The notes below the pieces were generated by a model, which saw nothing but the letters and a program-made list of their open reading frames with translations, was not told the DNA's origin and did not search any database. The position numbers and the translations under genes were made by a program. From NCBI RefSeq assembly GCF_001194135.2, contig NC_068994.1, positions 36,707,995 through 36,771,994 on the forward strand: a DNA stretch of 64,000 nt. The letters run 5' to 3'. This stretch comes from Octopus bimaculoides (lineage: Eukaryota). Below are positions 1 to 64,000 of this stretch, piece after piece. Position 1 is the first letter of the stretch, and every line of letters starts with the position of its first letter.

Positions 1-266
1 TTATGGTTTTGGTACTTTAGGTACAGATGGCAGGGGTTTGGGGAAAGAAGAGAAGCTATTTTTTATTGGTAAATTCCAAGGTTCTGGGAGATTAGCAGTT
101 TTTATTCTTAAGGATTTAAGATCAATAACATCATTGCAGACAATTTTTTGATCAACAATTGCTTGACAGGAAGGTTTTGTAGAAATATCCTTGGGTTTGT
201 GTGATGTCCATGGTAAAGAACTCCTACTTTTGTGTTGCTGTTGATCCTCTTGACAATGCTTGAAAC
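1..266 (-). CDS. Terminal coding exon of a protocadherin-like gene (GFKHCQED...LPEPWNLPIKNSFSSFPKPLPSVPKVPKP*)
   Basis: The frame is open from 324 to the TAA at 3-1. A phase-1 acceptor (ttttctttgtttacttttacgag|) fits the upstream donor; an in-frame alternative acceptor lies at 308. The WNLP-x-x-NSF...KPLP-x-VPK end resembles octopus protocadherin C-termini as I recall them. Confidence 0.7.
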
Positions 267-1928
267 CTCGTAAAAGTAAACAAAGAAAACAAAAATGTTC
301 ATTGTGAGCTAAGATTAGGCTTTGTTAACATTGATTTTTGTCTAAATTTAACTACTTTGGGTATATTTCTCTCCAGAAAGTTCCTCCTCTGGTATTTATC
401 TCCCTATAACTTAGAATAACAAGATTTTGAATGAATATAGCTTTTGTATACTCTTGTAGATATTGTTGCATCTTAATTTTCATTATGATTTAGCTTCTAT
501 TCTTTTTTTTTAATCTCTTGTGATAAACAATGTGGAAATCTAATTGTTACATTCCCTTTTGCTTTATAAATAAACTTAGTCAAATAACATATATCTATGT
601 TGATTTGTTGTTCATAATTTCACAATTCCAAACTGTAAGAATCCTTTCTGCTGTTGAACGTATTTGATATTTGTTGATTATTGAAAAATAAATTGCTGAT
701 ACATCTTTCAGGTTTTTATATTGTTTACTGTTATTAGTTCAGTCTTTCTTTAGCAATATTTAACTTTCCTTTCCCTAGACTTATTGTTTATCAGACACAT
801 TATAAGCGTTATTTACAAGTAAATTGTAAATATAATTTGTGTCAACAGAGATACTGAATTCTTATATATCTAAATTGTTTTAGATGAGTTATTACTAGAG
901 CATTTTGAATTGTTAACATCGTCCTTTTTTAGCTCATACAAACTATGTTTGTGTTTGTTTATCAACTGAGGATCATATAGATATATGATTACTTTTTACA
1001 AACTCTTTAAAGTTCCAGTTTATCCAGCAGATAGTACAATATTACTTCAAGTAATATTTAAATTTTTTTTTTTTAGTGGCAACCATATTGGGGAGGATTT
1101 GATACTGGGTTTACTGACATTTAACATTAAATGAAGAATCATTGGTTAAATCTTCTTCCATTTCCAGGCTAATATCTGCCACTTCTGAGAACGAATTTAG
1201 ATTTACAAACATTTGTCCCATTTGTCTGTAAAATAATTAGGGAAAATGTTGAAATATTGCATAGTTTTTGAGTTTAATGCAAATACTTTTTCCTGATGAC
1301 CAGTCTAAAGCATTTGAAGAAATAGTCTTTTGCAAAAAGAAAAAAAAGTAACTAAAAACGAAAAATAATTGTTTTTCATCAGTATTGAAATGTTACCTTG
1401 TTTTTAAGGTAGTGATATTTTGAGTACTTATTATCTGTAAATGCTATACATACTAAAGAGTATGTTATACTAATTTGAAAATTCACACCTTTTTCTAATT
1501 TCAATTTTCTAATTTTTAGATTTCAAAGTGGGGATCAAAATTCTCAACACAAATGTCTTGGAAAAAGAATTGCATTGAAAACTAGTAGCACATTAGCTTA
1601 GCCACAGTCATATGGCTGGAACTAGTTAATGAATAAAGAGAAAAAAGTTTTGATCCTGTATAGATACTTAAAATATACATCTTGCTAATCATGTTAACTG
1701 TTTTACAAAGCCAATGAAATAATTCATGTACCAGCTTTTGAACAAATTATCCTATATAAAGAAAACAATGTTTTTAACAGTTTGAACACTGGAAAATTAT
1801 TCTATAATTGTTTGATAATAAATTAAGTGATGAAGTTGAAAGAGAGGTATTAGATTTAGAAAAACAGGAAAACTGTTAGCCTAGAAGGCTTGTAAATGAC
1901 GGGAACTGTTCTTTTATGATGTACATAC

Positions 1929-2079
1929 CTGGTAAGGTTTCGTAATGTACTGTATTTCTCTCACTCCATCCATGTCCACTGTCACTATCAGAAGACATAG
2001 TTGATATTTTATTGAAATGGTCAGTAGGTATAAGCATAAGTTCATGTTCTTTACTAACACCAGATGTCACTGCAGCCTC
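1929..2079 (-). CDS. Internal 151-nt coding exon of a protocadherin-like gene (EAAVTSGVSKEHELMLIPTDHFNKISTMSSDSDSGHGWSERNTVHYETLP)
   Basis: Long pyrimidine tract ending tctttag|, phase-0 start, CCAG|GTATGT donor in phase 1. The S/T-x-DSGHG-W-S-E...HYE-x-LP motif resembles the conserved cytoplasmic motif of mollusc/octopus protocadherins (recalled, not searched). Confidence 0.75.
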
Positions 2080-3281
2080 CTAAAGACTCGTAATCAAACA
2101 AAATGAAGGTGAGAGAAAATTTGTTATATAACAAAAAAAAAAAAAAAAGGAAAAATATAATTTGCTTAATTACAATACACTTAAAAAATTTTTTTAAATT
2201 AGAAAAATAGATATTCATATAATTTTCTAAAACTTCTGAGGCTGTTTGAAAGCTATATGGTACAGTGAAATTTATTTTTAAAATATCAAATAGCTGGTTG
2301 AACAATATGCTAAATTTGCAATAAACATGTTTAAAATATCCTTGTTTGCAGTGGTGGCTTGTGGTTAATTTGTAGTGCACACAAAAATTATTTTATGAAT
2401 ATTATATGTAGCAATACCCATTTATTTTAGTTTAACCCATAGCTATTATTCATAACAAATATATTTTAAATATAACTGTAAAACTGTATATCGTTTAGCC
2501 TGGGTACATTATTAATTGTTGTATAATGAGCCATTAAAGAGCCATTAGAATCTGCTAGCTAAAGTATTGCTTGTATCTCTTTTCTAATGCAATGTGTCAT
2601 TTCCAAATGCATTTAGCTCACAATGAATGAGATCAGATTTCTCAGAGCTCCTTGAAATATTTAATATCAATCTCTTAGCTCCTTGTGTGAGAGAATGTTC
2701 CACAGAGTAAATGTTTTTAATACTGTATGCTCTTAAGAGTGTTAAATAATAAAATGTAAACCAGCAGCTAGGAATGGATATTATTAGAAACAATGGCCAA
2801 CCCATACCAGCATGGGACATAAGCATTAGATGATAATGCTGAAGACAATGACGATGACAATATGTTATCTATATTTCAAAACTTTATGTTTACAACTGTG
2901 CCTTTATAATGAAGGCATTATATGCAACATAACATTTAAGTTCTCAGAACAGATTCTAAACACAGCCATAAATGCATATATACAAATCAGTAAAATCAAA
3001 TGTTTAATATTCAAGACATTTGGATTTTATTGCTATAATTTTTAATATGAAAATTATTTTTATAATTTTTGTAATTGCACAATTATTAAAGCAATGGACG
3101 AAATACCTAGTTATAGTAATTATTTTCTGGCTCCAAATCTTGGTGAAAATGACATAGCCTTTTATCTTTTTAGGGCCATGAAGATAGTTTAAGGGATTCT
3201 TAGTTATTAAAACGGATCTTTCATTAACTGGGTTAGTTGCAAAAAACACAAAATTTGAATAAATGTTAATAATCATATTAC

Positions 3282-61380: not shown

Positions 61381-61830
61381 TCCTCACAGCTTTAGGTTTC
61401 TTATCTCATATATATGTGTGTGTGTGTGTGTGCAGTTTATTTCCGTTAGACAGCAAGGATATTTAATTCAGTTTTATCTTCAGTAAATCTAAATTTTGCA
61501 ACCTCTATATGTAAGTAGAAATAAAAGTTTGAAAAAATCAGAGTTATTTAAGAAATCACTATTAATATTCTGCTAAGATATTTCTAAGGGTTAACAAATA
61601 TATTAGTTTTAAGTAGAACATGCTTAAATAGTTATGGAAGTTTATTGCAGGCTATCAGATTTAGAATATTCTGTTTAGTGTTATTTAATTCGTGCAAACA
61701 TGGCAGACAAAATGGAAATAATGATTTGTTGTAAAAAGCAAAAAGGCAGCAGGAAGATGAAAAATATCTCACTAGTTGAATTTATACACACATGTATATA
61801 CATGTGTGTGTATATATTTGTGTGTGTGTG

Positions 61831-61888
<58 letters not shown>

Positions 61889-64000
61889 AAATCTTATTTT
61901 AACTATAAAAGTAGTGATAAAAATAGCTGCAGACTATCATTAGGTAAGTTATTTATAAGAATTCATGTGTTAACTTCTAGCTTCTTGTGTTAATAACTAT
62001 AATTTCTCTTAAAGGCATTAATAATGCATTTAACATCACATTTATTTTTAAGTTAACTGACAGTCAACACATATGATCTGTATGTATGTGTTGCTCAAAC
62101 TGTCTTCAAAATATCCATCATTTGAAGACTGAATATAGATTAGTTATTATAGGCTGCATTGATTGGATTATCAACGTCAGTTTTTGTGTTTCTATTCACA
62201 CTACATTTTGACTAGTAAAGTCTCTACCTATTTTCGGGTGCCATAGTTTTACCACATATGCATGCTTATAGATGAATTTGAACTACAAAAATTTTTCATT
62301 TGTAATATATGGTCTTTGTGCACTTAACTATTTGAAGCTATTATCTAAAAGTATTGAGTTATTAATCATTTTGTAACAGAAGGATCTTGCTAACTGAATA
62401 ATTGAAATATTATATATTATCTTGAAGGTTCAAAATTATACAGTAAATATTTACAAATATTGTTGTTGGTTGTGGTGGTGTTTTGTCCACAAGTCAGTCC
62501 TGATTGAGCAGATCTAGCATCAGAAGATGAAGATTCATGGCCTAATGGCAAGACTATTGGATGAATGATCATTAGGTTGTAGGCTCAATTCTTGGACTAA
62601 GTGGTATGTTGTGTCCTTGGACAAAGCACTTCATTTTACTTCACTCCAGTCCATTCAGCTAAAAATGAGTTATGTCTTCTTTAGAGTGGCAACTTGCAGA
62701 CTTTTAGACTAAATTCTTGTGATTGCAAAATGTCAGCAGCTCTTTATGGCTACAACACACTAGATGATGATAATTATCAAAAGCATTCAAGCCATGATCA
62801 TCTTGTCTTTTGTTCTTCAGGAATAATGTGCATTAGACCACGTTTATTCAGTGTGCCTGACTCTTAATTATTAAGCCCTATTGGAACCATATCTTTAAGA
62901 ATTTCTAATATCATCATGAGGAATTTTTAAAAATAACCATTTTTTTCAATTGCTGGTGTAGGAAACACATTCTTACATAAAATCATAATAGGAAAATTCA
63001 GTTCATATATGAATACTTTAGAACAAGCAGTTCTCTATCTTTGAAGCCAGGTGACCTCAAAAAGATTGGTGTAAGAAAAGAAGTGTGGTTTGGGGGAGAT
63101 TTGGTTATCATTTCTATTAGGATGAACGACCAAATGGAAACCTCTTTAAGTAGCATTACTAACCAACTTCAGTAGTACTTAGCAAGTTTTGGTTCCATTT
63201 GTATATGTAAAATGGAACTATCCATTGAGGGTTAAAAGACTGGGGATGCTGTCACAGTCATGCCGTCTGTGATTGTGTTGGAGACGTAAACAAAGTAAAA
63301 TTTCAAATGGGAATTAAAATCAGCTTATAGCTATATATTTAAATCAAGCTTATCTCTATCATACTACATTCAAGAGTATTTGACCAATACAAAACTAGTT
63401 AGTAATCTGAGATTAAATATAGATTCATGTAAATTCTGCTATGTTTTAATGCAATACATATTAAACAGTTTGTTTCACTAAAGCTAGTTGGTTAACAATT
63501 CCACTTCACATTTGAATATTTGGTATCAAAATGAAAATATAACATAAAAAGTCTCCTGTAATGTTTACAAATATGTATACTTGTAAAAATAGATCCAACT
63601 CAAGTTCAAAATCAAAACATCTACATTGAAAGATAAAATAAAAGCTATTCTAATATCAATCACCTTTTAATGATTTCATTATATTTGTTATTTTGGAATA
63701 AACTATATTATATATACTTATATCAGTAATTTTTTTTTTTTCTATAGATTACATTTTTATATCAAGAAGTTGTTTTGGAAGCCACATAAAGTTCACTGGT
63801 TTGCTAAAATCACTGATGAGTCTAGTGAAAAACCGCATTAGTCCTGCTTGTTCTGGTATATAATCCAGCTCTTCATTGAATAGATTACTATGATGCCTCT
63901 AATTTAAATTCACTGAGTGACTCAGCTTCGTTTTTAGCCTCCTATTATTTCCATCTCAGTGATTCAAGAATTAGTTTCTGTCCAACGATGTGATGCTGCA

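Follow-up and report, generated by a model that had tools for sequence, protein, structure and literature searches.

A protocadherin tail without a nearby ectodomain in Octopus bimaculoides: very probably the 3′ end of a single three-exon gene with a giant first intron

Background

To what kind of gene does a protocadherin cytoplasmic tail belong when no ectodomain exon lies within some 60 kb of it? We took up this question in a 64,000-nucleotide stretch of the Octopus bimaculoides genome (the window; contig NC_068994.1, positions 36,707,995 to 36,771,994). An earlier note had described three minus-strand exons in it, A, B and C, coding for a protocadherin-like tail, and had left three possibilities: the exons could be the constant part of a variable-exon array, they could close a single gene whose intron is huge, or they could be an orphaned 3′ module. 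We hold with high confidence that positions 1–2079 form the 3′ end of one conventional O. bimaculoides protocadherin gene with three exons, and not a shared constant region. The locus is already known: it is an annotated gene with the products XP_052829050.1 (931 aa; local identifier P0150) and XP_052829051.1 (854 aa; P0147), putative protocadherin beta-18 isoforms X1 and X2. Coordinates are collected in Table 1.

Table 1. Features of the window discussed in the text (positions in nucleotides, minus-strand features given 5′ to 3′ where they are exons)
Feature	Position	Length	Strand	Description
Exon C, last coding exon	266-1		minus	Phase 1 to the stop codon TAA at 3-1; 87 full codons and a split Gly codon
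Isoform X2 coding part	258-224		minus	Alternative acceptor, AG at 260-259, first exon base 258, 8 nt within exon C
Intron 2	267-1928	1,662 nt	minus	GT..AG
Exon B	2079-1929	151 nt	minus	Bounded by AG and GT, phase 0 to 1; encodes EAAVTSGVSKEHELMLIPTDHFNKISTMSSDSDSGHGWSERNTVHYETLP(G)
Intron 1, 3′ part	2080-64000	61.9 kb	minus	Repeats and transposon remnants, seven N runs, no cadherin-coding sequence
Exon A of the earlier note	3328-3282	47 nt	minus	Rejected as an exon; chance AG..GT open segment in intron 1
DDE_3 transposase remnant	37539-37886		plus	Pfam PF13358, E=2.1e-7; not part of the protocadherin gene

Exons B and C encode the tail of an annotated protocadherin

The tail was recognised through its relatives rather than through a known domain. 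The 153-aa peptide read from exons A, B and C matched no Pfam family at E≤10, and the cytoplasmic part of XP_052829050.1 likewise matched none. Word-index homologue searches gave no match with the peptide and two with a tail alignment, which is uninformative given the sparse index, and exact look-ups of the exon B read-through open reading frame (ORF) and of the tail-only protein P0015 retrieved no record. When 1.84 billion cluster representatives were scanned in full with HMMER, the peptide had 19 matches. Two of them were full-length octopus protocadherins, P0014 and P0018, in which the last ~120 residues align to the peptide. Short tail-only proteins were numerous among the matches and came from Octopus vulgaris, O. 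sinensis, O. bimaculoides and Argonauta hians. Fifteen aligned tails have in common a C-terminal module, D[VI]IDLKS...PWNLP..NSF..[YF].KPLP.[VI]PK, the stop codon following within a few residues, and the window carries this module in full (NDVIDLKSLRIKTANLPEPWNLPIKNSFSSFPKPLPSVPKVPKP, then the stop). A likeness of the ..NSF[TS]S[YF] stretch to a WIRS motif came under consideration, but we make no claim of it.

The orthologue cluster was found with a chimeric query, an Argonauta big exon joined to the window tail, followed by local peptide comparison of the retrieved proteins. Residues 784–921 of the O. vulgaris protein CAI9732408.1 (921 aa; P0031) matched residues 16–153 of the peptide at 99.3% identity, with the first residue of exon B as the exact starting point of the match. 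The 90% cluster of this protein holds both O. bimaculoides isoforms, the O. sinensis proteins XP_029645598.1 (P0148) and XP_029645599.1 (P0149), the ectodomain-only models P0151 and P0152, and A0A0L8HAS0; the Argonauta hians orthologue is GAB1604334.1 (P0032). The C-termini of P0151 and P0152, two older O. bimaculoides models, have no convincing match in the window and are probably spurious terminal exons located elsewhere.

Against XP_052829050.1 the correspondence is exact: exon B gives residues 794–844 and exon C, with the conserved tail motif NDVIDLKS...PWNLPIKNSFSSFPKPLPSVPKVPKP, residues 844–931, such that the 138-aa product of the two exons is a 100% identical suffix of the protein. One of the 138 tail residues is different (S to T) in the orthologues of O. 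vulgaris and O. sinensis. The product also contains A0A0L8HAS0 (P0153), a 124-aa tail-only O. bimaculoides model of 2015. The HMMER matches and the exact suffix bear out the earlier identification of a protocadherin cytoplasmic tail, with B and C real among the three proposed exons and A unsupported. XP_052829050.1 has one Cadherin_2 and five Cadherin matches (Pfam), its ectodomain lying outside the window; the tail peptide thus comes from a protein that has both cadherin repeats and a transmembrane segment.

All models of the gene join a 793-aa big exon ending in ...MAQRSHQ directly to exon B (EAAVTSG), with the junction ...RSHQ/EAAV. As annotated, isoforms X1 and X2 have this first exon in common and part at exon C, where the alternative acceptor at 258 shifts the frame (...HYETLP/ALSRGSTATQK, stop TAG at 226-224). 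The resulting product reproduces the C-termini of XP_052829051.1 and of O. sinensis XP_029645599.1, each of 854 aa. Isoform X2, annotated in both species, therefore ends without the conserved C-terminal motif. The first base of the window is the last base of the stop codon, and so the 3′ untranslated region and polyadenylation signal fall outside it.

Taken together, the gene models predict the following course. Exon 1 (793 aa) supplies a signal peptide, six cadherin repeats, a transmembrane helix and the membrane-proximal cytoplasmic part, and its phase-0 donor (...RSHQ) would be spliced over a giant, repeat-filled intron to the acceptor of exon B at 2079. Exon B would then be joined to exon C, with the acceptor at 266 in one form and at 258 in the other, the latter giving the frameshifted short tail. 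Exons B and C contribute an octopod-specific C-terminal module, an SDSGHGW segment followed by DVIDLKS...PWNLP..NSF..KPLP.VPK, which presumably docks intracellular partners. On these models the junctions are expected to be used in vivo.

A giant first intron separates the tail from its ectodomain

The earlier note had reported no ectodomain exon between 3.3 and 64 kb, and ORF, Pfam and tblastn searches agree on this. Once N runs and simple repeats are set aside, the longest ORF in the window has 146 aa. Pfam found no Cadherin domain among the 150 longest window ORFs, the transposase remnant of Table 1 being the only match. Tblastn with more than ten full-length octopus protocadherins, XP_052829050.1 included, gave nothing from 2.1 to 64 kb, its matches being limited to exons B and C.

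The coding range of XP_052829050.1 spans 105,267 bp (GCA_001194135.2). Subtracting 2,379 bp for exon 1 and 2,079 bp from exon B to the stop, intron 1 would measure ~100.8 kb and the ectodomain exon would lie ~39 kb past the right end of the window, roughly at window-equivalent 102.9–105.3 kb. The tail stands in the window without its head because a first intron of ~100 kb exceeds the window's length. Coding ranges are 114,408 bp for the O. vulgaris orthologue CAI9732408.1 and 52,508 bp for the Argonauta orthologue GAB1604334.1. In the Argonauta locus (L009) the big exon occupies 10001–12331 and exon B 58426–58579, with exon C starting at 62240, leaving a first intron of 46,094 bp. The giant first intron of this gene is thus conserved across octopods, at 46 kb in Argonauta and 101–110 kb in Octopus. 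Elsewhere in the family, first introns measure 35.8 kb in an Argonauta paralogue (the P0005 gene) and 0.46–2.7 kb in tandem-array paralogues. No other gene is called within the coding ranges of the three species (105–114 kb in the two Octopus, 52,508 bp in Argonauta) or in their 10-kb flanks, and tblastn detected no second ectodomain sequence in the 46,094-bp Argonauta intron or within 10 kb on each side of that gene. The annotations, the coding ranges and the Argonauta map support the second possibility, the last exons of one gene whose intron is huge.

Two points weigh against this assignment. The exon junctions are drawn from RefSeq and ENA gene models and from agreement across species, not from RNA reads, and the placement of the ectodomain exon comes from the gene table, 39 kb beyond the window and outside the DNA that was read.

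The tail exons are conserved in sequence and in plan

Window positions 1183–3192 align to L001, a Logan contig of a related octopus. Exon B is identical to it at 149 of 151 positions (98.7%), against 88.6% and 88.1% in the flanking introns (binomial P 2e-6; intron 2 stands at ~88%), and both differences are synonymous. Exon B is under strong purifying selection. Between the window and the Argonauta locus, the unique conserved stretches are exon C (86.3% over 321 nt; L009 62189–62508) and exon B (87.1% over 171 nt), all remaining matches being dispersed repeats. At the protein level, O. bimaculoides and Argonauta GAB1604334.1 are 85.6% identical in the tail and 86.4% in the ectodomain.

The exon plan is conserved as well. 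In five homologous genes from three species (L003, L004, L006, L008 and L009), a big exon ends in phase 0, exon B runs from phase 0 to phase 1, and exon C from phase 1 to the stop. The middle exon of the family measures 151–193 nt, and the window's, at 151 nt, fits this three-exon octopod plan. The tandem-array genes of O. vulgaris CAI9732430.1 (P0014) and O. bimaculoides XP_014774861.1 (P0025) have the same plan, splice phases and C-terminal motif family, and exon B is 151 nt long in both the window gene and the CAI9732430.1 gene. These two differ from the window gene in their first introns, of 1.5–2.7 kb instead of ~100 kb, and in their tails, which are 34–38% identical to the window's.

Private tail, shared constant region or orphaned module

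The reading that first suggests itself is borrowed from vertebrates: exons B and C would be shared constant exons onto which several upstream variable ectodomain exons, each with its own promoter, are spliced, as in vertebrate Pcdh-alpha and Pcdh-gamma. The likeness to the vertebrate clusters is real, with a large exon coding for ectodomain, transmembrane helix and proximal cytoplasm, small downstream exons for the distal tail, and genes lying within a protocadherin-rich chromosome region. The first intron is very long, and fused multi-protocadherin gene models such as P0023 (6,653 aa) hint at a read-through signal. Moreover, every big exon examined has a phase-0 donor at its end and each exon B homologue likewise begins in phase 0, a universal design in which splicing across genes would stay in frame. 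We nevertheless consider a shared constant region very improbable. Three independent annotations link one ectodomain exon to this tail. The 62 kb of the window at positions 2080–64000 contain no ectodomain sequence, and neither does the Argonauta intron, read over its whole 46 kb, or the 10 kb upstream of that gene. The annotated 105–114 kb ranges have one ectodomain exon and no other gene. In the O. vulgaris tandem array (L008), each of three successive genes has a big exon with its own exons B and C within 1.5–3 kb. Among 39 full-length tail-bearing proteins no different ectodomains carried identical tails: tail pairs at least 90% identical always came with ectodomains at least 93% identical, which marks such pairs as orthologues, and proteins of nearby accession numbers bear their own, different tails. 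Unlike in vertebrates, then, a single ectodomain exon in the octopus has these tail exons to itself. The tail also lacks sequence similarity to the vertebrate constant region, with no homology to it or to Pfam cadherin cytoplasmic families at E≤10; this absence of Pfam matches fits the report by Styfhals et al. that octopus tails are without the vertebrate CM1-3 motifs (PMC6339937). Albertin et al. (2022) likewise argue against shared final exons, finding that cephalopods do not use them and that protocadherin diversity arises via whole-gene duplication (PMC9068888). The same paper contradicts the array in the squid Doryteuthis, splicing variable exons onto shared tails, that the earlier note had mentioned, and the suggestion of constant exons in the octopus finds no support in a locus with a single annotated ectodomain exon, an empty Argonauta intron and array members with tails of their own. 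We see an equally slight chance of rare in-frame read-through splicing from upstream protocadherin big exons onto the acceptor at 2079. If it did occur, the conserved intron of 46–110 kb would act at a low level as the functional counterpart of a variable/constant arrangement, one overlooked in annotation.

That exons B and C might be an orphaned 3′ module, the decaying remnant of a duplicated tail outside any functional gene, draws some support from the 2015 annotation, with its stand-alone 124-aa 'uncharacterized protein' (A0A0L8HAS0), and tail-only models are common in the family (P0003, P0004, P0007, P0015). We give it next to no probability. The reading frame is intact and the splice sites are canonical; exon B changes only synonymously, and its strong purifying selection contradicts decay. 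The tail is about as similar to that of Argonauta (85.6%) as the ectodomain is (86.4%), and the current models of three octopus species attach it to an intact ectodomain exon. Two Argonauta tail-only models are themselves annotation artefacts with an intact big exon just upstream. The single three-exon gene with a private tail agrees with the published view that cephalopod protocadherins diversify through whole-gene duplication and not through shared constant exons.

Exon A is a chance open segment of the first intron

Exon A has AG and GT boundaries and keeps a frame open into B and C, which is how the 153-aa peptide arose. Its peptide occurs in none of the 182 proteins compared, every isoform and homologue included; tblastn with all homologues matches exons B and C alone, and exon A is not conserved in the orthologous Argonauta locus. 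It would also need an upstream donor in phase 1, and the donor is in phase 0 in all five homologous genes from the three species. The acceptor of exon B holds the same position in both genomes (ttag/GAAGCAGCAGTGACA in Argonauta, ttag/GAGGCTGCAGTGACA in the window). An apparent tblastn homology of exon A to the 5′ end of an Argonauta exon B (L007) proved spurious, having crossed the acceptor TAG and the polypyrimidine tract. An acceptor at 3328, as the earlier note had it, is therefore unsupported; the relevant one is at 2079.

Exon A might still be thought a genuine exon of the gene, rarely used as a cassette or alternative, given its AG and GT boundaries, the polypyrimidine-rich stretch upstream and an open frame of 15 codons ending in phase 0. 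Segments of this quality are abundant: AG..GT segments of 40–200 nt, open in a frame ending in phase 0, number 4,763 region-wide, and the 1.9 kb just upstream of exon B contain 60 that are as good. Inserted between a phase-0 donor and the phase-0 exon B, moreover, its 47 nt would break the frame. With the segment missing from every isoform and homologue and unconserved in Argonauta, we regard a cassette exon as extremely unlikely.

Split, fused and shortened models in the family

Protocadherins with long introns come apart in short windows and in older annotations, where ectodomain and tail stand as separate pieces; A0A0L8HAS0, A0A0L8GH38, CAI9732395.1 and several Argonauta models are examples. 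The significance of the present case goes little beyond such housekeeping. The Argonauta hians 'tail-only' models GAB1604420.1 and GAB1604374.1 (P0013 and P0005) take as their first residue a Met inside an ectodomain exon that is intact and ~800 codons long. The intact exons lie at 7697–10249 in L003 and 7736–10159 in L004, the models having been shortened by annotation and not by biology. In O. vulgaris, the tail-only model CAI9732395.1 (131 aa) has a 19.9-kb intron between two tail exons and an isolated first codon (ATG/GT), and no ectodomain exon was found in the 17.9 kb upstream at this locus (L005; OX597827.1, 4.02–4.07 Mb). The ectodomain-only model CAI9732376.1 (810 aa) shares 90% identity with the big exon of Argonauta L004. 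Both models (L005, P0028) are probably further long-intron protocadherins split by annotation.

Fusion occurs as well. Several tandem units are concatenated in the giant models P0023 (O. sinensis XP_029644520.2, 6,653 aa), P0024 (1,785 aa), P0167 (1,745 aa), P0029 and P0030, and in P0023 an exon-B-like segment follows each ectodomain unit. These giants are prediction fusions or read-through transcripts. Short C-terminal isoforms, of 812–819 instead of 946 aa, were observed in O. bimaculoides and O. sinensis (P0178 against P0175 and P0171; P0037 against P0165), where the phase-0 donor of the big exon is joined to a tiny alternative terminal exon. Tail-less isoforms seem to be a general feature of the octopus protocadherin family.

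Gaps and repeats in the window

The window has a G+C content of 33%. Its seven N runs all fall within 10035–58405, inside intron 1 and at least 6.7 kb from any exon discussed. The seventh, of 295 nt (58111–58405), is missing from the program's gap list and is flanked by microsatellites like the others. No genuine reading frame spans the gaps, and the longest ORFs listed for the window are artefacts of N runs joined to (CA)n and (TA)n microsatellites. Besides the transposase remnant of Table 1, mariner/Tc1-like fragments lie on the plus strand at 14234–14759 and 52223–52552, with no significant Pfam match and weak HTH_11 similarity only. An Rfam scan of the window found no family at the gathering threshold, and this includes a dispersed repeat of ~110 bp that resembles a short interspersed nuclear element (SINE), present at 6931–7027, 13226–13338, 20327–20432, 43119–43210 and 54128–54208. 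The same SINE-like repeat occurs in at least eight copies in the Argonauta locus L009 (~80% identity) and in the O. vulgaris locus L005 (~90%).

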